DNA of 46,845 bases, taken from Macrostomum lignano. Taxonomy: Eukaryota. Below the pieces are notes generated by a model that searched no databases, was not told the DNA's origin, and saw only the letters and a program-made list of their open reading frames with translations. Where the stretch lies: positions 1 through 46,845 of the forward strand of contig NIVC01004410.1 in the NCBI GenBank assembly GCA_002269645.1, written 5' to 3'. Position 1 is the stretch's first letter; every line of letters begins with the position of its first letter. The translations under genes and the position numbers were made by a program. Positions 6,443-28,195 of the stretch are shown here, one piece after another.

Positions 6443-7060
6443 CTAAATTTCGATCAACCAACCAACTTGTCCAAAAACGCACTTTCCGTATATTTCTGCA
6501 TTACAAGAACAGAGGCAACTAATGTGCTGTAAAGCGTCGTAGGCAAAAATACACGCGCCGAAATTCATTTCTTCGACGAGGCTCACAACCGTTAAAAAGA
6601 AGCGAAGGCTACCACCACGAGTCAGTTTGAAATACAAACAAAACAACACCCAAATACCACAATGTCCAGACCGAGGATCCTGAATAGCAAATCGGCTGTA
6701 GGACCAATTTTGAAAATCCCCACATTCTCGCCCCAACCACCGTCTAATATTTTCCGGCGGATTTAAACCAAGCGAATCAAAATATTCCCCGACCCTTCGT
6801 CCACGGCCCCCCCCCCTAACCCGCCTGCTACTCACCCAAACTGCAACCCAATGCCTACCAGGAAGATTCGAAGTGTCTGTATTCGCCACAAAGAAATAGT
6901 CTTTACCATCTAAAGGTAATTGTCCAAGAGTTCTAATCGAGTCCTGAGGATACACACCCAAAAAGACAACACCAAACAATCTCATACATAGAATTGTAAT
7001 AATTGACCGCAAGAATCTGTCACTGGCACTCTGCAACATGTTCAGATTCACTTCCTCCAT
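6443..7060 (-). CDS. Polinton/adenovirus-type (clan CE) cysteine protease, 205 aa
   Basis: FLGVYPQD, VANTD..PGRHWVAV (His), EYFDSLG (Asp), IQDPRSGHCG (Gln, Cys) in the expected order and spacing. Confidence 0.85.
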   Translation of the reverse strand: MEEVNLNMLQSASDRFLRSIITILCMRLFGVVFLGVYPQDSIRTLGQLPLDGKDYFFVANTDTSNLPGRHWVAVWVSSRRVRGGGRGRRVGEYFDSLGLNPPENIRRWLGRECGDFQNWSYSRFAIQDPRSGHCGIWVLFCLYFKLTRGGSLRFFLTVVSLVEEMNFGACIFAYDALQHISCLCSCNAEIYGKCVFGQVGWLIEI

Positions 7061-7200
7061 GCTGTGCCCGGCACGACGTCGCGAAGCTCCGTGATCTGCA
7101 GCTGCTTGTCAAATAGACCACCGAATATTACATTGTAGACAACGCGCTTGTTGCTTGAGCGAAGCGCAACTCCAACTTTACATTTCCTTCCTTATAGAGC
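7048..7200 (-). pseudogene. C-terminal remnant of Polinton major capsid protein (PY), frameshifted near 7150
   Basis: LYKEGNVKLELRFAQAT then, in a shifted frame, VVYNVIFGGLFDKQLQITELRDVV; resembles the G.LRLELKFA...IVYAEFEN.IEID..RNV C-terminus of Polinton MCP; stop overlaps the protease start. Confidence 0.55.
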
Positions 7201-7493
7201 TGAGCACCATGCACGTTACGTCTACGCAAAAAAGCGAGAAAAGATTCAAAGCCACCTACCATGTCTTTTTAGCGGTCTGTCTCGGACAACATACTCCGCC
7301 TCCGCAGAACTACCCTCTTCGAAAAGAGTTTTTACAAGAGCGTCGTATCTCCTTTTGAATGCCTTCAGAAGCCGATTTTTGGTGCTTCCTCAACACCAAC
7401 CTCTCGAACAGGACCGCTACTTGGCCCATTTTGCAGTATTCGCCGAGAATTTTCTAGTCTTGTCTTTACACTAGCATTGCATTCACTACGAAT

Positions 7494-7721
7494 ATGGACA
7501 AATCCGCCCGAAAGAAAGAACTAGCTGAGCGATATGTGAGAGACGGTAAGCAATTATTGGGCTTTTTGTTTATTAAGAAGCTGATCGGGTACTAATGGGC
7601 TGCGTCTTCTCTCTTTGCAGCGTTCAAGAACGAGGTCTTTGCGCGGCCGCCTCCGGGTTATATGTACCCCGAGAATGTCACGGTTGCGAGGGCGAATATG
7701 CCTTGGCAGTGCAAGCCCTAG
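7494..7721 (+). CDS. Candidate small two-exon ORF inside the Polinton (7494-7545, 7621-7721; 50 aa, MDKSARKKELAERYVRDAFKNEVFARPPPGYMYPENVTVARANMPWQCKP), function unknown
   Basis: Donor GTAAGC, branch-like TACTAAT at ~7591, polypyrimidine tract plus TTTGCAG acceptor, phase-compatible. Confidence 0.35.
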
Positions 7722-8114
7722 GTACTGGGTGGTACCGCTTTTTCTTCCGGGAGATGAAGTCTGGAAAACTGACGACTATGGACTATTGGGACTTGACTGC
7801 GGACGCCTGACTGCGCAATGGAACGATACTGATATGTAGTTGTTCGTATATAATTTGGTAATATTAATGTCTACTTAGTATTGTAATAATCCACTATTCA
7901 TTAGGGAATTTTAAAGTTATTTAAAAGACTGTCATATCGCGATTTTGCGTTCGTTTGCCTTAGTTTACCATAAAGAATTTAACGTCATGATACTAAAACT
8001 GTATCCGATCTGTTCAAATATATAGAATAAGACAAGTCAAGTCGATTCGACCCTAAGACTGTTTCTCACTACGAAGGTTCAATTTATTATTGTGCATGGC
8101 CGTCAGTACCGAGC

Positions 8115-8360
8115 TCAGAAGGATCTCGTCACAGCAACACTTACAATTACCCGGTTTTTTCGGATGTGATTGGTTTGTCGATCAGTGACTGAGAATTGAA
8201 AACTGATTATGTCTTTTGGCGTGTTATACTTTAGTCCGTTAAATTCAAGTATACTTAGTTTTTTGAGCAAGTGATAGTACAACGAACAGGAACGGTGGCG
8301 AAGAACTGCAGAAATGAACAGGTTGGACAACGAAAAAATGATATTGAAGCATTCAATCAA
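8115..8360 (-). pseudogene. Possible C-terminal fragment of Polinton minor capsid (PX/penton)
   Basis: LYYHLLKK...PKDIISFQFSVTDRQTNHIRKNRVIVSVAVTR loosely fits the penton C-terminal pattern; weak. Confidence 0.25.
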
Positions 8361-9173
8361 GACAGTTTAGTGGCTTACGAATGTTAGAAATTCAAAATAT
8401 GAATGTATACCCGAGCCGAATAACTGTTAAGATATTTGGGGGCCTACTACTGTCTTAAACTAGCAACTTTTTGTCCCATCTTTGAAGTATGTATATATTT
8501 GGCTGGTAAATTTCAAATACGTTTAAAAATAAAAAATAGGAGTTTGTATCGTTCGTAATTCTCAATGGTCTTTTCTTGAAAATTTAAAAATTGGGGTCTT
8601 GAATGACTCCTGGTACGAAAGGCAGTATGGGGAGAAAGTATAAGGCGCAGCAGGCGGCTTATTTACTGCCTGTAGCCTATTCTGAGCTGGGTTTTGCTTG
8701 CAGGGGGATTGTGGCACAATTTGACTTCTGCAATTTATTAAGCTCTTTTCTTTTGTTCTTTGTGGGTGCGTGTTTCCCCTATTCTTGTAATGCAGAAATA
8801 GCTATGTCGTTTTTCAGCAACTTGGTTGATCGGTGTCGGGGTCTTTTCTTTCTCGTTCTTTGTGGCTGCACTGCAGTTTAGTTGGAATTCCTGTAGAATA
8901 CCCTACCATTTGGTTCGGTACCTTATTTGATTTTTAATACAAAAATAAGGTATGTGCGTAATAAAATTTCTGACGGGTACCTTATTACGTGTTTTGCAAT
9001 TGAAAAATGGGGTATGGACGTAATTTTCTATTACTACGAGCTACTGCTGCCCCTCCCCTCAGACCCTTCAGTGGCCGCTATTCTCCTTACTTAATTAATA
9101 TTTCTACAGTGATAAAAGCCAAATAAATGTGAGCATATCTCGCCATCTCACTGCAGCGCTCAGACCAGGCATC

Positions 9174-10207
9174 ATGAACCCATTAACCCAAGTCCGCAAT
9201 CAGCGCCTGATGACTGAGAAGGAGCTCCAACTGGGCACGGCGAACACCCAAAGCTCCTGGCACTCGATGTTCAAAGACTCCGCTTGGATCTACATTGGCG
9301 GCTTGGACTATGAACTCACCGAAGGCGACGTAATCTGCGTGTTCTCCCAATACGGCGAAGTGGTCAACGTCAACCTGGTGCGGGACCAGTCCACTGGCAA
9401 GAGCAAAGGCTTCGCTTTCCTGTGCTACGAAGATCAGCGATCAACCGTGCTGGCATGCGACAACCTCAACGGAGCCCGAGTTGTGGGTCGCACTCTGCGG
9501 GTTAATCACGTGGAAAGCTACAAGGTGAAGGAGCTGATTAAACCGGACGATGATCCGGTGAAGCAGCGGCTTAAGGAGCGCGGCTGCGCGCCTGAAGTTG
9601 GACATGACGGCGATTTGAGTCCGCCTCGCCGTCGGCGCTCGCCGCCCGCCGCTCCTGGAGGCTCAGCCGCTCCTGTGCGAGTGAAGCGCGAAAAAATCGA
9701 TCCAAATTATCCGGATTACCAACCGTCTGATCGTAGCCGTAGCCGTAACGGACATCCGGGTAGCCGCGACGGACATTCGGGTAGCCGCGACGGACATCGG
9801 GTAGCCGCGACGGACATCCGGGTAGCCGCGACGGACATCCGGGTAGCCGCGACGGACATCCGGGTAGCCGCGACGGACATCCGGGTAGCCGCGACGGACA
9901 TCCGGGTAGCAAGGATCGACAAGTCGCTAGCACGAATCGTAGAAAGAATTATAGTCATAGCCGTAGCCGTAGCCGCGATGGACATCCGGGTAGCAAGGAT
10001 CGACAAGTCGCTAGCACGAATCGTAGAAAGAATTATAGTCATAGCCGTAGCCGAAGCCGTAGCCGTAGCCGCGACGGACATCCGGGCAGCAAGGATCGAC
10101 AAGTTCCTAATCCAAATCGTCGAAGAAATCGTAGCCGTAGCCGTAGCCCACCGTCCAGAAGTGACGCTGCCAGATATCGAAGGTCTACTACAAGTAGTAG
10201 AAAATAA
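9174..10207 (+). CDS. RBMX2: RBMX2/Snu17 (RES complex RRM protein) with RS-rich tail; single exon; apparent 1-bp deletion at ~9798 (as sequenced the ORF ends at 10232)
   Basis: MNPLTQV..SWHSMFKDSAWIYIGGLDYELTEGDVICVFSQYGEVVNVNLVRD..GKSKGFAFLCYEDQRST is the RBMX2 RRM; restoring CATCCG in the 21-bp GHPGSRD repeat gives an RS tail ending TAA at 10205-10207. Confidence 0.92.
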
Positions 10208-11050
10208 TTTCAGTGGTTTTGTGTCGTCATAACAACGGTTTTGACCAAGCCTCATTGACTATTGTACAGATTATGATTTTTCAATTTGAAAGTTCTATTT
10301 TTAATAGCTTGGGAGACTGATTCTACCCAAATTAGATGAAGCCGAGAGGCAGATTCTACCTATAACTTACTGCTAATAATTATTGGCATGTTTCGTTGAA
10401 ATTTAATGCCTACCGGTAATTTTGATCCAACCAGTTCTTGCTGTTATTATTAGGTTATGTTCAGATAACGGCAGTGTACTATGCATTTTACAATACTTTG
10501 GTAAATATCAAAATATACTTTAATAAAAACACATGTTCAGTACTGATATATAGTGCTCTTCTTATGTGTATTGCAAATGTAGTTATTAACGGAGTTGTTG
10601 CTCATTTATTTTTTTAAAATCTAAAATAACACCGTTCGTAACAATTTAAAGAGAGTTGCTTAGCAAAGCAATTTACTGAATATGCGATTTAAAAGGGTTA
10701 AAAAGAATGTTAATTTTCTACAGATAATGTAAACAGATTTAATCTTAGCTCACTAATACAAGCTACTTGATTTTTTTAGATTTTTTGCAGTCATGAATGA
10801 CCTAATTTAACACTTGGAAAATTTTTTACCACAAATCAGTGATGTGCCTGTCGTTTTTTAGAAACATAAAATTTCACAGAACAGCCTTCAAAAGATTTTC
10901 TAAGAAACCAAGTGGATCTCGTTTCAACACTACATGTTTATACTTAAGTCATTCTGTGTTAACTACTCGCACAGATGTAATCTTTGTCGCTGGTCTGAGT
11001 AAATTTCAAGTTAATATATTGACTGACGCGAACTATACCATATCAGATAA

Positions 11051-14000
11051 TTAGTTCCAGTACGGTCTATAATGCTCCGGTAGGCGAGGCACGTGTCTGC
11101 GCCACAGGTTTTTGTCCTCCTGCGACAGGCGAGCTACTGGCCGAAGAAAACTCTCTGTTGCTTTCCACTTTCTTGCCGGCCTTTCCGTTTCCTGCATGTG
11201 GTAATGAGGGTTGCCAGGCTACTGATTATCTAGTGAGAATTTCACGAGTATTCCGTACCTGCATTTGCTCTAATAAAATGACAGCGTGCGCTCTCCAGTC
11301 TCAACCCGTTGAAAACGGTACCGTGACAAGAATCGCTAAAAAGTCGTTGCAAACAACTTACTTGTGACTCTGGGCGACTCTTGTGACTTTTTAACGACTC
11401 AAACGCGTCAAATGCGACGGAGGCGACTTGCGTCGCAAAAGCGTAAATCATGAAAAAATTGTCCAAGAATCGTTGAGTTGGCGTTATAACTTTTGCTACA
11501 GATACGACTCTAATTCATCAAGCGACGCAAATGCGCTTTAAACACAACTCAGTGACTACAGCGACTTTAGCACGCCTCAAATACGACTCTTTACGGCACC
11601 AGAGTCGATTTCAGAGTCACAGACAACAAAACGCTTCGTGACTTCTTTGGTGACGAATTTTTGGTGACTTTAACCATTTCATCTCATCGTTTTAGAGTCG
11701 TCTAGAGTCATTTCTTTTCATTTCTTTCATTTCATTCATCACTTTCATTCATCACTTTCATTTCATTTCATTCATTTCTTTCCTATTTTGTGTTACCTGC
11801 AACGACTGTAAGGCGACGCAAGTGACTTTGGTACGCTTCTTAGCTTAGATACCGTTTTCATCGGGCAATTCATTTATCCCTGAGCTGAGATCAACAAGAA
11901 GCTTCTCCACTCTCGTCAATTTACTCCCCATCTGCTTTCTTCTCTAACTCCTTCTTTCCCCATCCATCCCAATCTTCTGTCCTGTCGCACCCTCCTCCAA
12001 TCATATCCACAGCAACAGTAGCAACTCAAACTTCTAATTTCTCCAGGCAGTTCCATACCATTGTAATAGACCGACGAAACAGCACGGCCTCGACGGTCAG
12101 CAGCGGGAAAAACAGTCTGCCGTAGCTTACAACCTTAGCAACCTTGAAGCCGCAGCTGTCGCACACTAGATCAACGCCAATTACTTCCACGCCGGGCACC
12201 CTTTTGGCTTCGCCGCCAGCTTGGCCGCGAAGTCGGCCGCCGCTGGCGAACATCTCGACATCGACAACAACCCGGTGGATGTCGCCGATTAAGCGAAGTC
12301 GAGTCGAATGTGACAGCTGAGTGAAGCACTTGCTGCACAGAATGTCGTGATCGCTGTCAAGAACTTGACCTCGGTTGTTGTTGGCCTGATTGACGTCTCC
12401 GCCTCCAGCCTCTTGGTTATCCTCATCTGTGTTCATCATTCTTACTTGATATTCGAGCATCTGCAAGCAGGAGGCATCAAAGCTGGGAGTCATACCAAAT
12501 CGACCCAATTCGGGATTATTTACATGTATATGTTAATCTCTCACCTGAATCTCCAGTTCCCTTGCTGACATGGCAGCAACGGTCCTCACCGCCTGGGACA
12601 TCATGGCATCTCGCTCCTGATTGATGCGTTCTTTATCTTTCAGCCATTCCTGCGTTTCCGCTACAATCACGTGATAGGCGCTGTTTCTGGCCCGGCCGCG
12701 GCCCTTGGTCTGCACCATGGAGACCTCGTTGGTCACGTGACAGTAGCGCACCACCAGGTTGCAGTCGGGGATGTCCAGGCCCTCCTCAGTGACGCTCGTA
12801 CAAGCGATCACTTTGTAGAGACCGCGTCGGAAGTCTTCAAGTCTGGCCCGCTGCTCAGCCGCGTTGGTGCCTCCCGTCGACTCGCCAGATGTTGCACCTG
12901 TCACGTAGGTAGCCTTAAGACGCAGTTCCGCACACTCGTCTACAAAATCGGCCAGAACGCGAGCGTAAAATTTCTGTTTTACAAAAACGATAGCGCGACT
13001 GTTTGGCTGGCCGGTGAATTGCTCGCGAAGAATTTCGACAAGCTTGTCCAGCGGTGGGCTGGACTGGAACATACGAAGGAGGAGTTCATTTTACAGGTTA
13101 ATACGAAGGTCTGGAGTCTTGCGAGTAAAGGGCATAAAAAATCAGCCTCTATGCTGTCTACCCCCATTACTTCCAAATGACTGCACTGTCAAAGAAACCC
13201 CTACTCATCCTGCGTCCATTTTTAATATACTCGTACTATCAGAACTAAAAAATCCCTAGACCCAGTAACCATGTTCCTCACCGAAGCCTCCTTTGTGCCG
13301 CAGAACCTGATCAATTGTTGCATTACGTCATCCAGATGCCGTCTCAGTCTTTCCTCAGCCTCGCTTGCCGGTGGCTTTGCCATCTCATCCTCGGTTCGCA
13401 GCTCCGTCTCCAAATAGCGCAACGCGTCCACCGCGCGAAAGCACTGCGCAATCATTTGAGCCTCGTTGCAGCAGCCAAGATACCTGCTGCAGGCTAATAT
13501 ATTCTTGCAAACGGTTTGGTCAGTGATGTTGTGCATGTTGTACTTCACGTTGGTGCAGTAGTTCAAGTACGCGGGAGTGCCTCGGGGAGGCACAGACGAC
13601 ACTGGCAGGCCTTCACTCTGCCACTGTTCAAGTGAATCGCAATAGTCGCGCAGAAGGCCCTCGCCCATGTTCATTAATCTGTTTAGCAGGTTGATAAACA
13701 CGTCGACTTTTGTTGGATCGCCAGGTGCATAGTGTATCTGGCAATCGGGATTTGATGTCACTTCATTGAGCGACTTGATGCAGCGCTGCACAGTGACTGG
13801 ATATGGGCAGTCGAGATTGGCGCACAGCTTGATTAGATGCTCCACGGCGGCCTCGAGTCGCGATGCTTTGCCGGTGCCTTGTTTGTACGAATGTTTTTAA
13901 GATGTTAGCGCATTAGACTGTGCGGTTGTACTTTTACTGGGTGTATTTAATGGCCTCTAATTAGGCTTTGAATTATCTTGAATAGCTACGGTTTTCTAGT

Positions 14001-17000
14001 GCTCTCCGTTGTAGTTCTCCAATATTCTATACATGTAGTGTCTGTTTGGAGTTCTCTAGCATCCATATTAAGGTTCGTGGAAACAACCCACTAGTGGTTC
14101 TAGCGAATGTTATTTGAAGACTCAAGCGACTGTAATGCAACTGTTGAGTCACGAGCGCATCACGTGCGAATCGTAAGAGTCGTCCAAAAGCCGTTGCGTT
14201 AGAAATTTTCTACTAACTCAAGTAGACTAAATAGATCGAGTTATTACACGTATGCTAGTAAACTGTGCAAGTCGATTCTAGTTCATAAAGTGATATGTTG
14301 AATGCTTTTTTCCTGAGCGTATTTAGCCACTCGGCAGATTTTGAAGGAAAAAAGCATTGCGGGCAAACCTCGGTGGGAAAAAAACTCGGCGGGCAATTCG
14401 CTCGCGGGCAAAATGCACTGCGGGCAAATCTCGACGGGAAAATCGTCTGCGGGCAGTTCTCATGGACCTGACTCTGAGATGCTTCTTGGCCTAGGTACCG
14501 TTTTTTTATCAATAGTGTTCTCTTAATGTCCCTTGCATTGTTTGGGTAATCTAGTATCTCTCAAGCGTCCCTTGTTACAAACTGCACTGTCTAAGTCTTT
14601 GAGGGTTTCTGGTATCCTTACTTAAACTCCCCCCTAGTGTTATCTTTTGGCTATAGTTGCTCCTAGCAGCTCTCACCTGGACTGGCCGTCAGTCCCAGAA
14701 TCTGCGGCAGCTTGCTTCCTTTCTGTTGCTCTTCAACCGACGATTCAAGAATCTTCTTTCGCCGCATATAGTGCACCATCACCCCTTTGCTTGGGTGGTC
14801 GTTTGAGCAATTGTGACACTCGTCGAAGATAATTAACCGAAATGCCGACACGCCCAGGCCGTTGAAGCTGTCGGGTTCGCGTTTCAAAGCGTTCAGCAGA
14901 ATCTGAGTGCTCATAACAATGATGGAGTGCCCCTTCAGAGCCTGGGCGAAAGGCATTCGATTTCTCGAATCCGCTCCACCGTGCACCGGCGGGCAGACGC
15001 TGTTGTGCCAAGGCGGCGGCAGGACCGAGCGGAACTCTTCGTACTGCTGCTGCACCAGGTTCGTTGTAGAGGCCAGGAATGCTACCTGAACCAAAAAATG
15101 TACAAAAAAGATGGAAACCGCGGTCCGACTTATACCCAAACATAACAGAACAAAGTTTTGCTTTTTTCACCCACCTTTGCTTGGGGCTCGGCCTTGAGCA
15201 GCCGCAGAGCGACGTACACGGCTACCAGAGTCTTCCCAGAGCCAGTGGGCGCGATCACTATCGAGTTGCGACCTAACAGGGCCGGCTCTGCCAACTCCAG
15301 CTGGTAGTCGCGGAGCTGCCGGCCGACGAGCTCGTTGTTGCCAGACGGCTGAGACCCAGGCGGCGATGGAGGCTGCTGATTGGCTATTCGCTCAAGCTTG
15401 TAAGTGTCAGAGTCGAACTTCAGTCCGTTGAGATCGAACCACCGGTTCGATTGGTCGACGACCGACTTTTTGGCCTCCTCGAACTCTGGACTCGACACCG
15501 TGTTGTAGAGCTTGGGCTGAAGCGCCGGGAGCTCTAAAATGAATGGGTGGCGATGCATTGAGACTGAGATTGATCATCCTTGAGTTCCCAATCTCAGCAA
15601 AGGTGGAGTCTTCCAGCTGCTTTTGCTCTGTGATTCAACCAGCTATTTCTGATACAATAATCTGGTCTCTCACCTGACTCGAAGTTTTGGCCGAACGGTG
15701 CAATGATGTTGAGCAGATCGACTGAGCTCTCGAGGTCAGCGATAGCAGCGAGGATGAGGTGCTCAAACCAGTCGTGAGGTGCGCAATCGATGAGCTGGCG
15801 AAGCACGCGATGGACGTCTGCGGGTTGAGGCGACAAGGGGAGATCTGGTAAGGGATCTGGAGATGGGGTCATGTGATCATGGTCATGTGACAGGAATCAG
15901 AAAGATAAATGAAAGCACCTCAGTAACACAGAAGCTCAGCAAATCAGCAACTCTGCATCTGAGCATTCTAATACCTCAGCAACTGAGCACCCCAATACCT
16001 CAGCAACTGAGCAGCCCCAACAACTCAGCAACTGAGCAGCCCCAACAACTCAGCAACTGAGCAGCCCCAACAACTCAGCAACTGATCAGCCCAATAACCC
16101 AGCAACTGAGCAGCCCAATAACTCAGCAACTGAGCAGCCCAATAACTCAGCAACTGAGCAGCCCCAATAACTCAGCAACTGAGCAGCCCAATAACCCAGC
16201 AACTGAGCAGCCCAATAACCCAGCAACTGAGCAGCCCAATAAATCAGCAACTGAGCAGCCCCAATAACTCAGCAACTGAGCAGCCCAATAACCCAGCAAC
16301 TGAGCAGCCCAATAACCTAGCAACTGAGCAGCCCAATAACTCAGCAACTGAGCAGCCCAATATCTCAGCATCTGAGCAGCCCAATATCTCAGCAACTGAG
16401 CAGCCCAATAAGCAATAACTCAGCAACTGAGCAGCCCAATAACTCAGCAACTGATCAGCCCAATAACTCAGCAACTGAGCAGCCCAATAACTCAGCAACT
16501 GATCAGCCCAATAACTCAGCAACTGAGCAGCCCAATAAGCAATAACTCAGCAACTGAGCAGCCCAATAACTCAGCAACTGATCAGCCCAATAACTCAGCA
16601 ACTGAGCAGCCCAATAACTCAGCAACTGAGCAGCCCCAATAACTCAGCAACTGAGCAGCCCCAATAACTCAGCAACTGAGCAGCCCAATAACTCAGCAAC
16701 TGAGCAGACCAATAACTCAGCAACTGAGCAGACCAATAACTCAGCAACTGAGCAGCCCCAATAACTCAGCAACTGAGCAGCCCCAATAACTCAGCAACTG
16801 AGCAGCCCAATAACTCAGCAACTGAGCAGACCAATAACTCAGCAACTGAGCAGACCAATAACTCAACAACTGAGCAGCCCCAATAACTCAGCAACTGAGC
16901 AGCCCCAATAACTCAGCAACTGAGCAGCCCCAATAACTCAGCAACTGAGCAGCCCCAATAACTCAGCAACTGAGCAGCCCCAATAACTCAGAATCTGAGC

Positions 17001-17689
17001 AGCCCACTCAGCAGCACAGCATCTCAGCTCAGCTCACGTGCTGCACTCCCGTCGCCGTCAAGATCTTCAGAAGACTTGCTGAAGTCCTGCAGTGACTGGG
17101 CGAAGACGTCTCTCTGCAGTGCTGCGGGAAGGCTGGCCGGCACTGACAACTGCAGCCGATGAAGACGCGGCAGATCCCGCCGATTGTCCAGGTGCAGAAT
17201 GTGCAGCAAGTTCTCCTGTGCTGCTGTTGCGTGGGTTCACAGGGAGATGAGTTGACATTTATTATGCTTTCTCGCATGTACAGCTCAGCATGACAGCACT
17301 TACAGCTTGTGATGCAGCGCAGAAGCTGGCTGAATGCGTCTTCGATTGGCAATTGGCCGACAACCTGCAGCAATTCGGACCAACTGCTGGGCCGATTCAT
17401 GGTAATGCCTTGAGTGGGATGAGCTGCATTGGGTGGAAATTCGATCAGGAGCAGACATTGCTGAGTAACGATAATTATTGTCAATTTCAAGAAATTTATC
17501 GATTAGATGAATTACACTTTTTACAGGTTTTCAAAGTTTAGTATTGAGGCACTCACCATTTTTAATATGATTTTCGTACACAGCCACAATATTGCCAATG
17601 TCAATTAGTCCTTCAATGTCGTCTTTAAATATATGGAAAAGAAGGCTAATAAGTCCTTCGAGTTCAACGCTTTCTTCGCCACCGTCCAT
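11051..17689 (-). CDS. RIG-I-like receptor A (2 CARD-like, DECH helicase, pincer, Zn-CTD); exons 17689-17557, 17423-17304, 17223-17038, 15817-15674, 15533-15175, 15085-14677, 13877-13282, 13063-12545, 12460-12059, 11191-11051 (1002 aa)
   Basis: LRDYQLELA (Q), APTGSGKT (I), DECH (II), GLTASPG (III), RAIVFV (IV), TSVTEEGLDIPDCNLVVRY (V), MVQTKGRGRA (VI); CTD CSKC/CDSC and RKWK; all introns GT-AG with compatible phases, total 3009 nt. RIG-I versus MDA5 orthology is not assignable. Confidence 0.9.
11305..11865. mobile_element. 561-bp MITE in RLR-A intron 9 (CCC...GGG ends, possibly CACTA/EnSpm-like)
   Basis: TIR CCCGTTGAAAACGGTA / TACCGTTTTCATCGGG (15/16); candidate 3-bp TSD CAA; many internal CGACT/GTGACT subrepeats. 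Confidence 0.6.
15905..17010. repeat. 24-25-bp minisatellite (CTCAGCAACTGAGCAGCCCAATAA) in RLR-A intron 3
   Basis: Direct periodicity; each unit contains the CTCAG-caa-CTGAG inverted repeat. Confidence 0.95.
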
Positions 17690-17868
17690 GGTTGATTGAT
17701 ATTATTTGTTGATAGGCTCAGCCGCTTTTTAGCTTATTTTTAATTAAAAACTAATTGATTAGTCCACTTGTCCGTTGTCCACTTGTCTTGCATTAACTAA
17801 CTTAGTAATGCAAAGCAATGCAGTTGCAGTGACAGAGCTGCCTCTATTTTATCACGACAGGACAGAGC

Positions 17869-17910
17869 GAAACTGAAAACTGGAAAAGGGAAAGATTTCT
17901 TGGAAATTCC
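17869..17910 (-). promoter_or_regulatory. ISRE/IRF-like sites plus kappaB-like site, 180-221 bp upstream of the RLR-A ATG
   Basis: + strand GAAACTGAAAACTGGAAAAGGGAAAG...GGAAATTCC fits GAAANNGAAA and GGRNWTYCC. Confidence 0.55.
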
Positions 17911-18409
17911 GAGCGCGCGCGGAGGGTATGGCCACCAGTTCTAAAAATAGATTTTATTTGGATATAACCAATGTACACTGGGAGTCTACGTTCATCCCGC
18001 AAGCTAAATGTACATTTCATTGCGTACAAGAGTGAATTTGAGGTCTATGCCCTTTTTCATTTCAAATCTTATTTTTTTGCTCTGGTTCTTTCTATACACA
18101 CATTAAAGCAGCCTTGCAATAATTTCATTTCCATTTCTGCTTGTGCTTTCCTATCAAAGTGCTGTGGTACTCTACTCTGTCTATTGTCCTTCCTGACTCC
18201 GAGTAAATTATGTTCAGTAGTTTCATGCATGATTTTTGTGTTTGTTTTAGATAACATAACAATCAATAAGCGTAATGGCACTTAAACTCTAGAATTTATT
18301 TGTTAGTAACGAATTCACCGATTGTAATCAAGTTACATGACTTATGAGTATCTAGTCGTGGAACAGTCAGCTACTTTAGGGTGTAGAAACTGGTTGAAGT
18401 AGGTGCCGG

Positions 18410-18845
18410 TCCTCCTCTCTCCCTACCCTACCTCTCCCTTGACTCCCTACCTCCCTACCTCACTCCATACCTCTCTCCCTACCTACCTCTATCTCTCTCC
18501 CTACCTCTCTCCCTACATCTCTCCCTACCTCTCTTCCTAAATCTCTCCCTACCTCTCTCTATCTCTCTTCCTACCTCTCTCCCTACATCTCTCCCTTACC
18601 TCTCTCCTGACCCCCTACCTCTCTTCCTATCTCTCTCCCTACATCTCTCCCTACCTCTCTATCTCTCTCCCGACCTCTCTCCCTACATCTTTCCCTTCCT
18701 ACCTCTCCCTACCTCTCTCTACCTCTCTCTATCTTTCTCCCTACATCTCTCCCTACATCTCTACCTCTCTCCCTAGCTCTCCCTACCTCTCTCTATCTCT
18801 ACTTCCCGACATCTCTCCCTACATCTCTCCCGACCTCTCTCCTAA
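18410..18845. repeat. CT-rich degenerate microsatellite (CCTACCTCTCTC-like) in the spacer between the RLR genes
   Basis: Direct inspection; strong pyrimidine strand bias. Confidence 0.9.
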
Positions 18846-19696
18846 TTGTGTAAACTAATTGTATAATAACCTGATCAATTTTAATGAAATAGCAAGTATT
18901 GCAAAAAGTGTTGAAAAATGGGAACTTTTCCAAGGAAACTTGGGTATTTTTTTAAGAAATTAGACAATTTTTTTCTATAACCGACATGTATTTTAATAGA
19001 GAAGTACAACAACTTAGTAAGAACTGGTGAAATTTACGAGTTGGAGAGAAAAATTGGCCGATATGTATCACATGGGCGTCGCCACAGGCGAGACAGAGGG
19101 GACATAATCCCCCAGTAGAAGCTAAGGGGGGCATGTCAAATACTTTGTCCCCCCATACGTCATTTCACCTTGTAACTTGCTATGGAAACCAATAATTTTG
19201 CTTCAGGGCGCCAAAATATAGCGGCTTCAGCGCCAAAATGAGTGACTGCGGCCCCAAAATGAGTGCCAAACAACACCGATGTTTAGCATAACGTATGAAA
19301 ACATAGTAGTCTACTTACAGTAGAGATAAGAAATCTGTTTCACTTATACTTCACAAACACCCAGGGATTAAAATTCAATAATATTTCAGCATTTTACACT
19401 TAGTAATGCAATTACAATTTAACACCGAGCCCAGGAAATGTTGGCAGCTTGGCCAACATGGTGAACAGTTGGCTGGTCTGGTCACCAGAGATTTCTTTTT
19501 CCAATGAAAAATCATTTAAAAGCTGTGATTTCCAACACGGCAGATACATGTAAATTTTGTACAAGTTTGGCTGGACACTTTTTGGGGGATTCGGAAAATT
19601 TGCAAAACCCTAAACAACCCGAAAATCCTTTCCCGAACTCCGATCCCGATCCCAAATCCCAACCCCGAAACCTAACCACTCCTAGTGAACGTAGAC

Positions 19697-21119
19697 CGGG
19701 GGTCAGCAAACTCCGGCCCGAGGGTCACATGCGGCCCGGCCCGCAATGCCTCACTATCCGGCCCTCGGGTCCATGGACACTTTAAAATGGCAATCCGGCC
19801 CGCTCAAGGTTTGTGTCTTCTCAGTTGTCTCTTCTCTTCTCTTCTCTTTTCTTTCCTCTCAGTTTCTCTTCTTTTCTCTCTCCTCTCCTCTTCTCTCCTC
19901 TACTCTCTCCTCTACTCTCTCCTCTTCTCTCCTCTACTCTCTCCTCTACTCTCTCCTCTTCTCTCCTCTACTCTCTCCTCTACTCTCCTCTTCTCTCCTC
20001 TACTCTCTCCTCTACTCTCTCCTCTTCTCTCCTCTACTCTCTCCTCTACTCTCCTCTTCTCTCCTCTACTCTCTCCTCTACTCTCCTCTTCTCTCCTCTA
20101 CTCTCTCCTCTACTCTCCTCTTCTCTCCTCTACTCTCTCCTCTACTCTCCTCTTCTCTCCTCTACTCTCTCCTCTTCTCTCCTCTTCTCTGCTCTACTCT
20201 CTCCTCTTCTCTCCTCTTCTCTCCTCTACTCTCTCCTCTACTCTCCTCTTCTCTCCTCTACACTCTCCTCTTCTCTCCTCTACTCTCTCCTCTACTCTCT
20301 CCTCTTCTCTCCTCTACTCTCTCCTCTACTCTCCTCTTCTCTCCTCTACTCTCTCCTCTACTCTCTCCTCTTCTCTCCTCTACTCTCTCCTCTACTCTCC
20401 TCTTCTCTCCTCTACTCTCTCCTCTACTCTCTCCTCTTCTCTCCTCTACTCTCTCCTCTACTCTCTCCTCTACTCTCTCCTCTTCTCTCCTCTCCTCTCT
20501 CCTCTACTCTCCTCTTCTCTCCTCTACTCTCTCCTCTACTCTCCTCTTCTCTCCTCTACTCTCTCCTCTACTCTCCTCTTCTCTCCTCTACTCTCTCCTC
20601 TTCTCTCCTCTTCTCTGCTCTACTCTCTCCTCTTCTCTCCTCTTCTCTCCTCTACTCTCTCCTCTACTTTCCTCTTCTCTCCTCTACTCTCTCCTCTTCT
20701 CTCCTCTACTCTCTCCTCTACTCTCCTCTTCTCTCCTCTACTCTCTCCTCTACTCTCCTCTTCTCTCCTCTACTCTCTCCTCTACTCTCCTCTTCTCTCC
20801 TCTACTCTCTCCTCTACTCTCCTCTTCTCTCCTCTACTCTCTCCTCTACTCTCCTCTTCTCTCCTCTACTCTCTCCTCTACTCTCCTCTTCTCTCCTCTC
20901 CTCTCCTCTCATCTCCTCTCCTCTCCCCTCTCATCTAATCTCTTCTCTCATAGCATCTCTCATCTCGCTTCTTACCTCTCCTCTCTCCTGTCATCTCTCA
21001 TCTCCTCTTACTTCTCTCTCGCCAATCCCTCTCCTCTCCACTCTCATCTGGCCCACAGGCCACAGCCATGAGCTAGATTCTTTACCTGACCCCCGAGGTA
21101 AAAAGTTTGCTAACCCCTG
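19697..21119. mobile_element. Non-autonomous hAT element/MITE with a ~1.2-kb internal CT microsatellite expansion (19830-21045)
   Basis: TIRs CGGGGGTCAGCAAAC / GTTTGCTAACCCCTG; perfect 8-bp TSD ACGTAGAC (19689-19696, 21120-21127); CGGCCC subterminal motifs. Confidence 0.85.
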
Positions 21120-21193
21120 ACGTAGACGCTCAGTGTACATTGGTATGTAGAATCTATTTTTAGAACTGGTGGCCATACCCTCCGCGCGCGCTC

Positions 21194-21235
21194 GGAATTT
21201 CCAAGAAATCTTTCCCTTTTCCAGTTTTCGGTTTC
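21194..21235 (+). promoter_or_regulatory. kappaB-like site plus ISRE/IRF-like sites, 180-221 bp upstream of the RLR-B ATG
   Basis: GGAATTTCC...CTTTCCCTTTTCCAGTTTTCGGTTTC (reverse complement GAAACCGAAAACT). Confidence 0.55.
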
Positions 21236-21414
21236 GCTCTGTCCTGTCGTGATAAAATAGAGGCAGCTCTGTCACTGCAACTGCATTGCTTTGCATTACT
21301 AAGTTAGTTAATGCAAGACAAGTGGACAACGGACAAGTGGACTAATCAATTAGTTTTTAATTAAAAATAAGCTAGAAAGCGACTAAGCCTATCAACAAAT
21401 AATATCAATCAACC

Positions 21415-24400
21415 ATGGACGGTGGCGAAGAAAGCGTTGAACTCGAAGGACTTATTAGCCTTCTTTTCCATATATTTAAAGACGACATTGAAGGACTAAT
21501 TGACATTGGCAATATTGTGGCTGTGTACGAAAATCATATTAAAAATGGTGAGTGCCTCAATACTAAACTTTGAAAACCTGTAAAAAGTGTAATTCATCTA
21601 ATCGATAAATTTATTGAAATTTGACAATAATTATCGTTACTCAGCAATGTCTGCTCCTGATCGAATTTCCACCCAATGCAGCTCATCCCACTCAAGGAAT
21701 TACCATGAATCGGCCCAGCAGTTGGTCCGAATTGCTGCAGGTTGTCGGCCAATTGCCAATCGAAGACGCATTCAGCCAGCTTCTGCGCTGCATCACAAGC
21801 TGTAAGTGCTGTCATGCTGAGCTGTACATGCGAGAAAGCATAATGAATGCCAACTCATCTCCCTGTGAACCCACGCAACAGCAGCACAGGAGAACTTGCT
21901 GCACATTCTGCACCTGGACAATCGGCGGGATCTGCCGCGTCTTCATCGGCTGCAGTTGTCAGTGCCGGCCAGCCTTCCCGCAGCACTGCAGAGAGACGTC
22001 TTCGCCCAGTCACTGCAGGACTTCAGCAAGTCTTCTGAAGATCTTGACGGCGACGGGAGTGCAGCACGTGAGCTGAGCTGAGATGCTGTGCTGCTGAGTG
22101 GGCTGCTCAGATTCTGAGTTATTGGGGCTGCTCAGTTGCTGAGTTATTGGGCTGCTCAGATGCTGAGATATTGGGCTGCTCAGTTGCTGAGTTATTGGGC
22201 TCCTCAGTTGCTGAGTTATTGGGCTGCTCAGTTGCTGAGTTATTGGGCTGCTCAGATGCTGAGATATTGGGGCTGCTCAGTTGCTGAGTTATTGGGGCTG
22301 CTCAGTTGCTGATTTATTGGGCTGCTCAGATTCTGAGTTATTGGGGCTGCTCAGATGCTGGGTTATTGGGCTGCTCAGTTGCTGAGTGGGCTGCTCAGTT
22401 GCTGAGTTATTGGGCTGCTCAGTTGCTGAGTTGTTGGGGCTGCTCAGTTGCTGAGTTATTGGGCTGCTCAGATGCTGAGTTGTTGGGCTGCTCAGATGCT
22501 GAGTCATTGGGCTGCTCAGATGCTGAGTTATTGGGCTGCTCAGTTGCTGAGGTATTGGGGTGCTCAGTTGCTGAGTTATTGGGCTCCTCAGTTGCTGAGT
22601 TATTGAGCTGCTCAGTTGCTGAGTCATTGGGGCTGCTCAGTTGCTGAGTTGTTGGGGCTGCTCAGTTGCTGAGTTGTTGGGGCTGCTCAGTTGCTGAGGT
22701 ATTGGGGTGCTCAGTTGATGAGGTATTGGGGTGCTCAGTTGCTGAGGTATTAGAATGCTCAGATGCAGAGTTGCTGATTTGCTGAGCTTCTGTGTTACTG
22801 AGGTGCTTTCATTTATCTTTCTGATTCCTGTCACATGACCATGATCACATGACCCCATCTCCAGATCCCTTATCAGATACCCCCTCATGTCGCCTCAACC
22901 CGCAGACGTCCATCGCGTGCTTCGCCAGCTCATCGATTGCGCACCTCACGACTGGTTTGAGCACCTCATCCTCGCTGCGATCGCTGACCTCGAGAGCTCA
23001 GTCGATCTGCTCAACATCATTGCACCGTTCGGCCAAAACTTCGAGTCAGGTGAGAGACCAGATTATTGTATCAGAAATAGCTGGTTGAATCACAGAGCAA
23101 AAGCAGCTGGAAGACTCCACCTTTGCTGAGATTGGGAACTCAAGGATGATCAATCTCAGTCTCAATGCATCGCCACCCATTCATTTCAGAGCTCCCGGCG
23201 CTTCAGCCCAAGCTCTACAACACGGTGTCGAGTCCAGAGTTCGAGGAGGCCAAAAAGTCGGTCGTCGACCAATCGAACCGGTGGTTCGATCTCAACGGAC
23301 TGAAGTTCGACTCTGACACTTACAAGCTTGAGCGAATAGCCAATCAGCAGCCTCCATCGCCGCCTGGGTCTCAGCCGTCTGGCAACAACGAGCTCGTCGG
23401 CCGGCAGCTCCGCGACTACCAGCTGGAGTTGGCAGAGCCGGCCCTGTTAGGTCGCAACTCGATAGTGATCGCGCCCACTGGCTCTGGGAAGACTCTGGTA
23501 GCCGTGTACGTCGCTCTGCAGCTGCTCAAGGCCGAGCCCCAAGCGAAGGTCAGTGCTGAAAGCAATAAATTTATCATACCACACAACATAATGGCAGTGG
23601 GAATAAAATGGAGACAGCGGAGTTCACAATTGCCGTCAGCGCTGGTTTACAAGACGATGTCGCCGATTGCTTTGCACCAGTGTGCCAAGTGCCATGTTTC
23701 ATGTTAAATGTTTGAACATTTGCCCCATTTTCAAACGCCATAATATCTTAGGTGGCACTTCTGGCATCCACTAATCAGCTGGTTCAGCAGCAATACGACA
23801 AGTTCAGGTCCGCCCTGCCCTCACCTTGGCGGGACAGAGTTGACCTAATTCTGGGAGGCAAAGACAACAAGAATCGAAAGCCATTCGCCCTGTCTATGAA
23901 GAAAAACTCCATCCTGGTCATTAGCACCCAAATTCTATTAAACGAGCTTGATAGAAAAACAGTTGCGAACATTTCCGATTTCCGCCTCATCATATTCGAC
24001 GAATGCCACAATTGTGCAAAGAGCCACGCCAGTATGAAAGTGATGATGCACTACCTGCGACTGAAGAGAGATCTGGAACAAGAGAATCAATCGGGAAGAT
24101 TCTTGCCGCGGATTCTTGGGCTAACGGCCAGTCCAGGTAAAATGCTAGAAAGGCATGAATTATTAAATTCTTGTTTTTAAGCTATTTCACGTCTAACGAT
24201 GCCTGATCTGTTCATTGTGTCTGATCTGTAAGGACACTCAATGTCCATTGTGTCTGATCTGTAGGGACACTACTGTCCATTGTGTCTGATCTGTAAGGAC
24301 ACTACTGTCTATTGCGTCTGATCTGTAAGGACACTCAATGTCCATTGTGTCTGATCTGTACGGACACTACTGTCCATTGTGTCTGATCTGTAAGGACACT

Positions 24401-27400
24401 ACTGTCTATTGTGTCTGATCTGTAAGAACACAACTGTCCATTGTGTCTGATCTGTAAGAACACAACTGTCCATTGTGTCTGATCTGTAAGAACACTACTG
24501 TCCATTGTGTCTGATCTGTAGGGACACAACTGTCCATTGTGTCTGATCTGTAAGGACACAACTGTCCATTGTGTCTGATCTGTAAGAACACAACTGTCCA
24601 TTGTGTCTGATCTGTAAGAACACTACTGTCCATTGTGTCTGATCTGTAGGGACACAACTGTCCATTGTGTCTGATCTGTAAGGACACAACTGTCCATTGT
24701 GTCTGATCTGTAAGGACACTACTGTCTATTGTGTCTGATCTGTAAGGACACTCAATTTCCATTGTGTCTGATCTGTAAGAACACAACTGTCCATTGTGTC
24801 TGATCTGTAAGAACACAACTGTCCATTGTGTCTGATCTGTAAGAACACAACTGTCCATTGTGTCTGATCTGTAAGGACACTACTGTCTATTGCGTCTGAT
24901 CTGTAAGGACACTACTGTCTATTGCGTCTGATCTGTAAGGACACTCAATGTCCATTGTGTCTCATCTGTAAGGACGCTACTGCCAGTGGACAAAACGCCA
25001 ATTAAACACCCAAAACATTCAAACGTCCAAAAAACCTGCACCTCAAGGCACCGGCAAAGCCAAGGGACCAGAGGATGCCAAGGAGCATCTTGTTCAACTG
25101 TGCGCCAATCTTGACTGCCCCTACCCTGTCACTGTGCAGCGCTATCTTCAGTCACTATTTAAATTTAACTCAGATCAAGACTGTCAAATCCTCTCGGTAC
25201 CTGCTAAACAGAGCTCGGAAGACGTATTCATTAAATTTTTAAACGAGCTGATGGACCTTGGGGAGAAGCTGCTATATAGCAATCGGAGCTCGCTGCTAAA
25301 CTCAGAGCCGGAAGCCCTCCAGATTGCATCAGCGCCGCCAAGAGGCACTCCAACTTACACAAACTACTGCTCCGATGTTAAGTACAAAATTCACCAAGTG
25401 GCAGACGAAGAGATGGGCAAAGATCTGTTCGCCTGTAGTCGTTATCTGGACACATTCAATCAAGCGTATATGATTGCGCAGTTCTACAATCCCCGAGGTG
25501 CGTGGCGCTACATCAAGAAAGAACTTCGAGCTGTGGACGAACTGGCTAAGCCCCCAGTCTGCGAGGCGGAGAGTCAACTGCGGCAGCGACTGCATAGCCT
25601 GATCGGGCCGCTAGAAAGATTCTGCGACACCAAAGAAGCTTCGGTAAGTTTGTTATTGAGTGCATTTAGCCAAATGCAACGTTCCATTATTTTGATGACT
25701 GGTTTATCGCTTGCAGTCGAGTCCTCCGCTGGACAAATTCGTGGAAATCCTTCGCAACCAGTTCAACTCGCAAGCCGACTCGCGAGCGATTGTTTTCGTA
25801 CAACGGAAAATCTACGCTCAGGTGATTACTGAGTTCTTAAACGAGCAACTACCGCATCTACCGGCTGCCTATGTGACTGGCGCAACTTCAAGCGACGCTT
25901 CCGGAGGCACTAATGCTTCTGAGCAGCAGGCTCGCATTGAGGGCTTCCGGCAAGGCGACTACAAAGTGATTGCTTGCACCAGTATGGCGGAAGAAGGCCT
26001 AGACATACCGGACTGCAACCTGGTGGTGCGCTACTGTCACGTGACAAACGAAATCGCCATGGTGCAGACCAAAGGCCGGTGCCGGGCCAAAAACAGCGCC
26101 TATTACGTGATTGTAGCTGAGACACAGGAGGCGCTGCGTCACAAGGAACGCGAAAATGAGCTGCGCGATGCAATGATGCAGCAATCAGTGGCGTGCGTTA
26201 CTGATTTAACGACTGAAGAGTTGGTAGTCAAGGTGAGAATCTTTCAGTTTTTTGTCGACAGTTTCAATCGCTGTGTTGACTTAAGGACAACTTTGTTTTT
26301 CTCTGTGCTGTGCCTCTTCGAGAGTTATAGCCAGGGACTACTATAACATCGAGACGGGAAACTAGGCAAATCATGGCAAAGTTTTTACGAGGCTGGTTTG
26401 CGAGGTTTACGAGGATCTTTGAGTAGTCCCTGGTTTTATAGCCTAGTGAGGACTCATGACTAGAAGGTCGGGTTTTCGAATCTCTACCCACTCGGAACAA
26501 TTCGTGACAAAGATACTTAACTTTACATTTTTTTAGTTTACCCAGCTAGCTGTAAAGTGGATGCCAGCATTAGCTGGGGTAATTGAGGGTGGGTGGCGAC
26601 CCCCCAGTCCTTTGACTGAACAGCCGTACGCAGCCTTCAGATGCGCCGCGCAATAGCTGCGGCTGAGCTGTCGGTTGCACATCTGGTCATTAGGGCAGGT
26701 GTAATCAATTATAGACGATTAAAGTTATGAATTCTCTTCTCTGATTCTCTTCTTTACGAGTTCTTGTGCATTATTAATGTTGGGTGTGGCCATAGACGAT
26801 TCAGTTGCACACACACCCATGCAGCCATGAGCTAAAGAAGCAATGCTTCAAGCTGGGAAAATAAAAAAGAAGGTTACGATAACATGAAATAAGACGCTCG
26901 GTTAAGAGAGCAAATACTTAAGAGGTCTTGGCTCACTGTCTTCCGCTAGAGAAGAAGTCATAAGAATTAGATTTGTTAAAATTCTTTTAGCCTTCTATAA
27001 GCTTTATACGCTACTGCTATAAGCTTTCAATTGCAGATGCTGGATTACCAGGAAAAGGCGCTGAAAGACGAAGAGGAAAAACGTGCTAATAATAGCACAC
27101 CTATCGGAAGTGACGTCATCATTGATAGCGACCACGAAATTCTGTGCCGCAAGTGTGAAAAAAAACTGTCGGATTCGACTCGGCTTCGATTGATTTGCGG
27201 AATCCATCGCGTCGTCCTGGATGCCGACATGTTCATTGGAGGTCAACGCATTGTTGGTCAACATGGAGGCGAGATCAAAAAGGTTCCCGGAATGGATATG
27301 ATTGGTGTGGATTTGCTGTGCGGCTACTGCAGCTACGGACCTGTGGCTAAAATTGCTCGCTACAAAGGCCAATTTTTCCCTTTGTTGGACCCGGAATGCG

Positions 27401-28195
27401 TCTGTTTTCGCCGATTGAATGACAAGGTAAGACTTCTATAGTTGGTATTGAAATTCTGTTCATTTAGAACGCAAATGAAATAAAATATGTAAATACTGAG
27501 CCTGTAAGAACATGTACGGTCATGTCAAGGCTTACGGGGAGAATTGCTGAGATGTCAAGGCTGATGGGGAGAATTGCTGAGATGTCAAGGCTTACGGGGA
27601 GAATTGCTGAGATGTCAAGGCTTACGGGGAGAATTGCTGAGATGTCAAGGCTTACGGGGAGAATTGCTGAGATGTCAAGGCTTACGGGGAGAATTGCTGA
27701 GATGTCAAGGCTTACGGGGAGAATTGCTGAGATGTCAAGGATGAGAGGTCAGAAGCTACATGTGGTTTATTCAAAAAATGATTCTATTTTTTGTTGCCTT
27801 TTTAAAGGGGGCGCTGATTGCTAGCAGTCACTATCGGCCCTAAAAGACGGCCTCAGCATTTCAATAATTTACCCCCATATGAGCCTTGACATCCGAGCAA
27901 TCCCCCATAAGCTATTGACATCTCAGCAATGAAACAATGCAGCAGTGAAAGTGTAAAAGCCTAACGAATTACCTCGGAAGGAATCGATCATGGCCGGAAG
28001 ATAATGGATCGCAACACCTTTCCTCATTTACTTTAGAAATTGGAAAAACAGGTGAGAAAGTGGAAACATACAAAATCCTTCCTTCGCGATGTTGCTGAGC
28101 TGAGCAGTGACGATAGAGACTACTGGCGTCGGGCAGTTCCGCGTCTGCCCAGACAGTACCGAGCTGCGGCAGTTCGAGGCGGAGCGCATCGTTAA
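21415..28195 (+). CDS. RIG-I-like receptor B; exons 21415-21547, 21682-21801, 21882-22067, 22906-23049, 23190-23548, 23752-24136, 25048-25643, 25717-26232, 27037-27426, 28037-28195 (995 aa)
   Basis: Same motifs (APTGSGKT, DECH, GLTASPG, TSMAEEGLDIPDCNLVVRY, QTKGRCRA; CTD CRKC/CGYC, RKWK); same intron positions and phases as RLR-A (1,1,1,1,0,1,0,0,0); total 2988 nt. Confidence 0.9.
22085..22790. repeat. 24-25-bp minisatellite in RLR-B intron 3 (inverted, shorter counterpart of 15905-17010)
   Basis: Unit TTATTGGGCTGCTCAGTTGCTGAG. Confidence 0.95.
24215..24980. repeat. 32-bp minisatellite in RLR-B intron 6
   Basis: Unit TGTCCATTGTGTCTGATCTGTAAGGACACAAC, ~24 copies. Confidence 0.95.
26430..26500 (+). 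mobile_element. Possible decayed tRNA-derived SINE head in RLR-B intron 8
   Basis: A-box-like TAGCCTAGTG and B-box-like GGTTTTCGAATC about 30 bp apart; no clean cloverleaf. Confidence 0.25.
27522..27740. repeat. 30-bp minisatellite in RLR-B intron 9, with degenerate inverted copies at ~27855-27930
   Basis: Unit ATGTCAAGGCTTACGGGGAGAATTGCTGAG x7; GAGCCTTGACAT and TTGACATCTCAGCAAT occur downstream. Confidence 0.85.

Follow-up and report, generated by a model that had tools for sequence, protein, structure and literature searches.

Two old, divergently transcribed RIG-I-like receptor genes of Macrostomum lignano whose 5' halves have probably been homogenised by recurrent gene conversion

How can two neighbouring genes be almost indistinguishable over their first five exons and saturated with synonymous change over their last five? 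The question is raised by a head-to-head pair of RIG-I-like receptor (RLR) genes, here called gene A and gene B, in the flatworm Macrostomum lignano. The window that we analysed, 46,845 bp in length, is the complete contig NIVC01004410.1 of the Mlig_3_7 assembly (GCA_002269645.1). In our estimate there is a probability of about 0.8 that A and B are old RLR paralogues whose 5' arms undergo recurrent, patchy, non-reciprocal interlocus gene conversion, and that the B arm in the window has been overwritten by A-type sequence.

Models of both genes were assembled by hand from open reading frames, splice signals and the similarity between A and B (Table 1). The genes are divergently transcribed, with 3725 bp between their start codons; all introns are of the GT-AG type, and intron positions and phases are identical between the two. 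An earlier note on this DNA, made from the sequence alone, had described two 10-exon RLR genes facing apart at about 3.7 kb with identical intron positions, and the models bear this out. Protein searches with the products retrieved the contig's own annotated genes, BOX15_Mlig016200g2 and BOX15_Mlig021912g2, and the hand-built models are the same as the deposited proteins (PAA47555.1 and PAA47556.1) save for one amino acid at the CAGCAG acceptor of exon 3. The deposited proteins come from a genome-guided RNA-seq transcriptome, and for both genes these RNA-seq-based models agree with the exon structure built here. In that transcriptome, transcripts at least 95% identical carry a common name prefix; since the prefixes of A and B differ, the two represent separate transcript clusters. 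In both genes exon 3 begins at a tandem acceptor, CAGCAG (NAGNAG; 21879-21887 in B, 17226-17218 in A), of which the deposited models take the downstream AG, giving proteins one residue shorter; both isoforms may exist.

Both genes are RLRs, as the earlier note had proposed from the same sequence. The helicase core is recognised by Pfam (DEAD, 4e-23 for B and 2e-21 for A; Helicase_C, 9e-18 and 7e-16, respectively), and the ATPase motifs APTGSGKT, FDECH, LTASPG and QTKGRxRA are intact in both translations. The Hel2i insertion (RIG-I_C, PF18119) scores 27.0 bits in gene A, against a cut-off of 23.2, and 22.6 bits in gene B, which is 0.6 below it; in both proteins the Hel2i region aligns unbroken to LGP2, MDA5 and RIG-I (query residues 265-874 against LGP2 7-585, E = 8.5e-67). 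The C-terminal domain (CTD; RIG-I_C-RD, PF11648; cut-off 25.6) scores 39.3 bits in A and 27.9 bits in B and contains two CxxC pairs in each (ILCSKC...LVCDSC in A, ILCRKC...LLCGYC in B). The best solved relatives are LGP2, MDA5 and RIG-I, with E values of ~1e-66 to 1e-64 over an alignment that runs from the Q motif into the CTD; the PDB scores do not separate RIG-I from the MDA5/LGP2 clade. The nearest relatives outside the pair are all only 36% identical; they comprise a third RLR type of M. lignano (Mlig018307) and two proteins from run assemblies.

Self-comparison of the window revealed two inverted arms, each of which spans roughly 270-300 bp of upstream sequence, exons 1-5 and introns 1-4 of its gene. 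The arms are 98-99% identical apart from a 24-bp minisatellite in intron 3. Coding identity over exons 1-5 is 938/942 nt (133/133, 119/120, 186/186, 143/144 and 357/359 for the successive exons, or 100, 99.2, 100, 99.3 and 99.4%), while introns 1, 2 and 4 are 99.2, 97.5 and 99.3% identical and intron 3 is 94.5% identical across its alignable part. Over exons 6-10, nucleotide identity is 71-76% and amino acid identity is 58%, and introns 5-9 are unalignable and unrelated in length. Synonymous divergence (dS), obtained together with non-synonymous divergence (dN) by Nei-Gojobori counting, is 0.014 in exons 1-5 and ~1.75 (saturated) in exons 6-10, where dN is 0.33 and dN/dS is 0.19. Synonymous divergence thus jumps more than 100-fold, and the step falls exactly at the exon-5 donor (15175/23548).

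These per-segment values agree with the initial description of near-identical first halves, diverged exons 6-10 and unrelated later introns: divergence is not uniform along the genes, and the saturated dS in exons 6-10 is that of old paralogues. Three details of that description are modified. The coding differences in exons 1-5, given as one synonymous change and one R/Q change, are actually four, comprising three synonymous changes (17407/21698, 15744/22979 and 15178/23545) and R305Q (15203/23520). The shared promoter, put at about 300 bp, has high identity over 267 bp and is weaker over the remainder. Near-identity does stop at the exon-5 donor, as had been noted, but the recent conversion tract described below ends about 30 nt earlier.

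The intron-3 minisatellite is built from the unit AACTCAGCAACTGAGCAGCCCAAT, which carries an internal 5-bp hairpin. The contig NIVC01004216.1 starts within this array, which indicates that the minisatellite breaks assemblies.

Most loci are present several times in the assembly, because M. lignano has a hidden polyploid genome and extra large chromosomes occur in line DV1 (PMC5704211). The same head-to-head pair is found on two further contigs, NIVC01000679.1 (252 kb; here M) and NIVC01004216.1 (54.5 kb; here L1), and this recurrence rules out a simple misjoin as the origin of the arrangement. L1 begins within the minisatellite of gene A intron 3. Between contigs the 3' halves, introns included, differ by 1.3-2.2% substitutions, and exons 6-10 are 98-100% identical. 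Two coding indels distinguish individual copies: at the end of gene B exon 6 (24099-24136) the window reads ...ENQSGRFLPRILGL where the other two copies read ...ENQSESCR(E/G)TRLP(Q/R)ILGL, and gene A on M has a 9-nt insertion in exon 5 just before Walker A (LDNAGPRNS versus LLGRNS).

Comparison of the three copies places the 5' half of window gene B among A genes. Across exon 4 and intron 4, pairwise differences among the window A, window B and M A sequences number 1-3 in 284 sites, whereas M B differs from this group at 25-27 sites (9%) and L1 B at 44-46 sites (16%). When the last 90 nt of intron 3 are added (~370 sites), window B has 3-5 differences from the A arms and 39-61 from the other B arms. 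Of the informative sites between the end of intron 3 and the early part of exon 5, 34 set the B genes of M and L1 against the same three sequences, and none unites the three B genes. Window B equals window A across the first 326 nt of exon 5, but in the last 33 nt of that exon it shares both variable sites with L1 B; within the initial 80 nt of intron 5, both A genes are separated from the three B genes by 15 sites, with no site for the opposite grouping. This clade switch, between 23513 and 23520 and about 30 nt before the exon-5 donor, supports the reading that the window B arm was copied from an arm of A type. As the B arm is now A-type and the window A arm is unchanged, the transfer would have been non-reciprocal, that is, gene conversion. 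The recent homogenisation of the 5' half by arm-to-arm conversion that the earlier note had proposed is thus upheld by phylogenetic incongruence with two other genomic copies.

The state of the B arm differs among copies: it is diverged throughout on L1, A-like in exons 1-3 and B-type in exon 4 on M, and A-like throughout in the window. Several conversion events are needed to account for these three states. The opposite pattern is seen at six clustered sites that lie 222-248 nt ahead of the gene A start codon, where window A has the base of all B arms and not that of the other two A arms. They hint at a possible short tract from B to A, although its direction is unpolarised without an outgroup.

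The B arms of M and L1 also differ strongly from each other (by ~9% in exons 4-5, with a dS of 0.12 over exons 1-5, versus 1.28% in the 3' halves; the stretches compared are M 22937-23578 and L1 7900-8540, in the numbering of the extracted stretches). At sites specific to either copy the other B copy always has the A-type base, and the M-specific and L1-specific sites are interleaved on a 10-20 nt scale. Since both diverged haplotypes are also seen among the predicted proteins of the older ML2 assembly, they do not stem from polishing noise. The interleaving would fit patchy repair of mismatches in long A/B heteroduplexes, if the B arm on which it acted was older and more diverged; unsampled donor copies or local hypermutation are further possible causes of the divergence.

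In our view the locus probably evolved as follows. Two old, divergently transcribed RLR paralogues would share their proximal promoter and the N-terminal module that exons 1-5 encode. These 5' segments would act as short inverted repeats that exchange sequence from arm to arm, patchily and repeatedly. The latest event or events in the window copy would have overwritten the B arm with A-type sequence between the promoter and a point about 30 nt short of the exon-5 donor, leaving the four coding differences. Spread beyond this point would be blocked at intron 5, because that intron and the DNA downstream offer no usable homology, and in the absence of conversion the helicase body, Hel2i and CTD would evolve independently under purifying selection.

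Several points weigh against this reading. Read correction or polishing could in principle inflate arm identity on this one contig; donor and direction rest on three copies with no outgroup species; and the interleaved B-arm variants, with ~9% divergence between M and L1 against 1.3% in their 3' halves, form a pattern that a small number of long tracts would not readily produce. Homogenisation may also be a by-product of proximity and inverted orientation, lasting until homology is lost at intron 5, rather than a selected state.

The concern over assembly can be taken further, into a reading in which the true B arm is diverged and the two arms were homogenised by correction of PacBio reads or by multi-mapping short reads. 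Mlig_3_7 is highly redundant and was built with Canu and polished by Pilon with Illumina and RNA-seq reads, and a contig from the same locus (NIVC01001153.1) has a suspicious, large palindromic structure. The same pipeline, however, preserved arms that are 9-16% diverged on the other two contigs, and reads with that much divergence would not cross-map. The window arms, moreover, retain scattered differences and minisatellites that are 15 copies apart in length, and the switch from A-type to B-type sequence is clean and lies inside exon 5, away from the repeat edge. We consider such an artefact quite improbable. A single inverted segmental duplication is unlikely for different reasons. It would have joined the promoter and exons 1-5 of one RLR to the body of its neighbour, breaking within intron 5, and no conversion would have followed. 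This would suit an arm boundary that lies just inside intron 5 in all copies and an inner boundary near -270 that is alike and fixed in the three contigs, where 93 sites split the A-side from the B-side spacer flanks. One event, however, can produce neither three B-arm states in three genome copies nor a segment-wise divergence of 0-16% within the arms, and the minimum number of separate transfers is two or three; a founding graft followed by later conversions is a possible variant.

Purifying selection on a critical signalling domain, with no transfer of DNA, might be invoked, given that the head is protein-coding and that R305Q is the sole amino acid change among the four coding differences. 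Introns 1, 2 and 4 and ~270 bp of upstream sequence are nevertheless as identical as the exons, and the very low dS of exons 1-5 stands against saturation downstream. In comparisons between copies, furthermore, dN/dS is ~0.36 for the head and 0.19 for the body, so that constraint on the head is looser rather than tighter. Selection alone is refuted by the identity of introns and synonymous sites, and we give this explanation almost no credence. A reciprocal crossover or inversion was likewise rejected: both arms are of the same type and not swapped, and the orientation of the spacer is constant.

The 3128-bp spacer has the same orientation on all three contigs that bear the pair. The earlier suggestion that it is invertible was thus not borne out (one orientation in 3/3 contigs), although inversion is possible in principle. 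A scan of the spacer for open reading frames returned low-complexity frames only and no convincing one. Its polypyrimidine arrays are strongly strand-asymmetric (GC skew down to -0.98), with both CT-rich on one strand, and the other two contigs carry ~2.3 kb of additional CT-rich array there (M: ~16700-17800). That such tracts could favour recombination is speculation.

Exons 1-5 encode a helical head of ~195 residues, a linker, the helicase Q motif and Walker A. The head (residues 1-195, exons 1-4) is predicted to be all-helical, with ~11 helices, and had been read in the earlier note as a tandem CARD (2CARD) module. Neither protein has a Pfam CARD or CARD_2 match at E<=1. A head profile searched against 1.84 billion representative proteins matched five Macrostomum RLR-type proteins only; a separate adaptor-like protein (MAVS-type) was absent from the same search, although a diverged partner may exist. 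Comparison by hhalign of the five-sequence Macrostomum head alignment with 13 canonical RLR 2CARDs gave a probability of 94.5%, collinear across both CARDs, with reversed and column-shuffled profiles at <=0.3%; this signal stems from the Mlig018307-type sequences, which by themselves reach 93%. The window head alone gave a weak but collinear match to the 13-sequence profile (score 23.7, P = 0.005; 0/100 shuffles reached this score, with a mean of 12.8 and a maximum of 19.8). A transitive route from the window head through the Mlig018307-type head to 2CARD was rejected, as its first link fails (P = 0.15, equal to shuffles).

AlphaFold models of the head are poor with either input, with a predicted local distance difference test (pLDDT) score of 47 from the five-sequence alignment and 55.5 from a 19-sequence alignment that includes canonical 2CARDs and would bias the model toward CARD. 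Foldseek searches of these models against the PDB returned nothing at E<=0.001. In a multiple alignment, the motif PHDWFEHLILAAI aligns with the (P)GWF..FL.AL motif of RLR CARDs. What stands of the 2CARD assignment is therefore the collinear profile signal (P ~0.005), set against the lack of a Pfam match, of a good model and of a Foldseek match, and we regard a tandem CARD-like head as a reasonable lead rather than a finding. The identity of the two heads, which had been taken as a maintained property, is confined to this contig: M has ~21 non-synonymous sites (dN 0.03) that distinguish its A and B heads, and the L1 B head has ~23 non-synonymous differences from the window head.

What might such an arrangement do? 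Given 53-54% identity between A and B in Hel2i and CTD, it is plausible that the two bodies have two RNA specificities. The head may be a signalling module, its sharing may have functional value, and the two heads could be compatible for the formation of hetero-oligomers. We offer as a doubtful extension the idea that promoter and head form a unit of concerted evolution maintained by selection, through which co-regulated sensors of different RNA specificity would feed one fast-evolving CARD-like module for oligomerisation and signalling. If this were true, patchy conversion would also create head diversity among the polyploid genome copies, and the pair would both mirror the paired receptors of vertebrates and represent a way in which an invertebrate has reached the 'two sensors, one output' logic of RIG-I and MDA5.

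In our literature search, neither this head-to-head arrangement nor conversion restricted to one module of an RLR was found described. The mechanism is not new, since segmental gene conversion between adjacent paralogues in inverted orientation is commonplace; what is new is the gene family in which it is seen. The evolution of RLRs has so far been discussed mostly as whole-gene duplication and domain grafting. The locus shows directly that the sensing half and the presumed signalling half of two RLRs have uncoupled histories, with a breakpoint at an intron, and its three genome copies appear to have been caught in different conversion states. Full-length trees or dN/dS values of these genes are misleading, and short reads cannot be assigned to A or B within exons 1-5. 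Transgenesis is established in M. lignano, so the locus is experimentally tractable for questions of antiviral signalling in a lophotrochozoan.

The whole locus is unusually rich in tandem arrays, and satellites lie at both contig ends (Table 1). On the left flank, the reading frame of the RRM gene continues across a tandem repeat with 21-, 84- and 96-bp periods at 9739-10148, and this repeat is therefore coding. Rfam and tRNA scans of the entire window returned no matches. A fourth contig, NIVC01001153.1 (14799-37422), corresponds to window positions 2266-10881 followed by the reverse complement of 964-14599, at 99.2-99.8% identity. More than 8.6 kb of the left flank, with the RNase P p30 and RRM genes, is thereby duplicated in inverted orientation around a fragment of gene A that consists of exons 7-10 only (484 aa). 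The structure is either a genuinely rearranged copy or else a palindromic chimera of long reads.

Table 1. Coordinates of the RLR pair, its inverted arms and other features of the window (TRF, Tandem Repeats Finder)
Feature	Position	Strand	Details
RLR gene A (Mlig016200g2, PAA47555.1)	11051..17689	-	10 exons, 1002 aa; GT-AG throughout; Pfam DEAD, Helicase_C, RIG-I_C, RIG-I_C-RD
Gene A exons	17689-17557, 17423-17304, 17223-17038, 15817-15674, 15533-15175, 15085-14677, 13877-13282, 13063-12545, 12460-12059, 11191-11051	-	
RLR gene B (Mlig021912g2, PAA47556.1)	21415..28195	+	10 exons, 995 aa; Pfam; PDB best matches LGP2, MDA5, RIG-I, ~1e-66
Gene B exons	21415-21547, 21682-21801, 21882-22067, 22906-23049, 23190-23548, 23752-24136, 25048-25643, 25717-26232, 27037-27426, 28037-28195	+	
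Left inverted-repeat arm	15152..17991	-	~270-300 bp upstream, exons 1-5 and introns 1-4 of gene A; self-comparison/blastn
Right inverted-repeat arm	21120..23572	+	~270-300 bp upstream, exons 1-5 and introns 1-4 of gene B; A-type sequence on this contig
Unique spacer between arms	17992..21119		3128 bp; CT-rich arrays 18443-18842 and 19829-21022 (TRF)
Putative 3' end of recent A-to-B tract	23513..23520	+	A equivalents 15210-15203; B-type alleles from 23520 on
Six-site cluster upstream of gene A	17911..17937	-	222-248 nt upstream of ATG; window A has base of all B arms, unlike other two A arms
Divergent 3' half, gene A	11051..15085	-	Exons 6-10: Hel1 from motif Ia on, Hel2i, Hel2, pincer, zinc-binding CTD
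Divergent 3' half, gene B	23752..28195	+	Exons 6-10; 98-100% identical to B exons of two other contigs
24-bp minisatellite, gene A intron 3	15949..17006		~43 copies; TRF
Same 24-bp minisatellite, gene B intron 3	22099..22772		~28 copies; TRF
Minisatellite, gene B intron 6	24208-24982		32-bp unit x24
Minisatellite, gene B intron 9	27522-27740		30-bp unit x7
RNF34/rififylin-like RING E3 ligase ORF (open reading frame)	814-1812	+	Left flank
RNase P subunit p30	4972-5538	+	Left flank
RRM protein	9099-10229	+	Left flank
Satellite, contig start	1-819		48-bp unit x17
Satellite, contig end	41298-46845		118-bp unit x47, 99% matches
Large array	35005-35746		AGTAG x148
Large array	38311-39994		19-bp unit x88

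Among known systems, the closest in protein architecture are the vertebrate RLRs. RIG-I, MDA5 and LGP2 share with A and B a superfamily 2 DExD/H core with the Q, GSGKT, DECH, TAS and QTKGRxRA motifs, together with Hel2i, the pincer and a CTD with two cysteine pairs; the ~195-residue helical module of the M. lignano proteins occupies the place where the tandem CARDs of RIG-I and MDA5 sit; and in both systems there are two sensors with different (putatively so in M. lignano) RNA-binding bodies. Unlike the vertebrate CARDs, the M. lignano head is unrecognised by CARD models, and the two genes are adjacent and head-to-head, with a head that would be shared via transfer of DNA rather than through ancient descent alone; a MAVS-like partner, moreover, is not known for them. 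Other flatworm RLRs have been described: planarians have the homologues PRLR1-3, of which PRLR1 mediates a double-stranded RNA response in vivo (PMC8797187), and M. lignano RLRs have been included in a published tree (PMC8476169). The Mlig018307-type proteins are likewise flatworm RLRs, with an N-terminal region that matches 2CARD profiles as described above; the window genes differ from them in their low overall identity and in a shorter head that has no significant match to the Mlig018307-type head.

Paired activating and inhibitory leukocyte receptors (KLRC/NKG2, CEACAM) are also homogenised by gene conversion (PMC3210942, PMC2832619). As in M. lignano, these are neighbouring immune-receptor paralogues in which conversion is limited to one functional module while the rest diverges. 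There, however, conversion acts on the module that binds ligand and leaves the signalling tails different, whereas the M. lignano pair is the mirror image, with the presumed signalling head and the promoter homogenised: its diverged half contains the RNA-binding parts (Hel2i, Hel2 and CTD), and its homogenised half is the N-terminal head and not the ligand-binding module.

Gene conversion between the arms of an inverted repeat is known, for example, from the human Y-chromosome palindromes. As in those palindromes and in inverted paralogues of Caenorhabditis, the M. lignano locus has inverted repeats around a unique spacer that would be kept near-identical by intrachromosomal, non-reciprocal transfer; unlike palindromes, its arms are only 2.4-2.8 kb long, comprise half a gene each and end in a promoter and an intron. 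Arm-to-arm conversion between the Caenorhabditis paralogues has been described, and conversion is known to homogenise paralogues yet raise variation within a locus (PMC3966223). The M. lignano B arms resemble that system in the same respect, in that conversion would raise the variation between copies of one locus.

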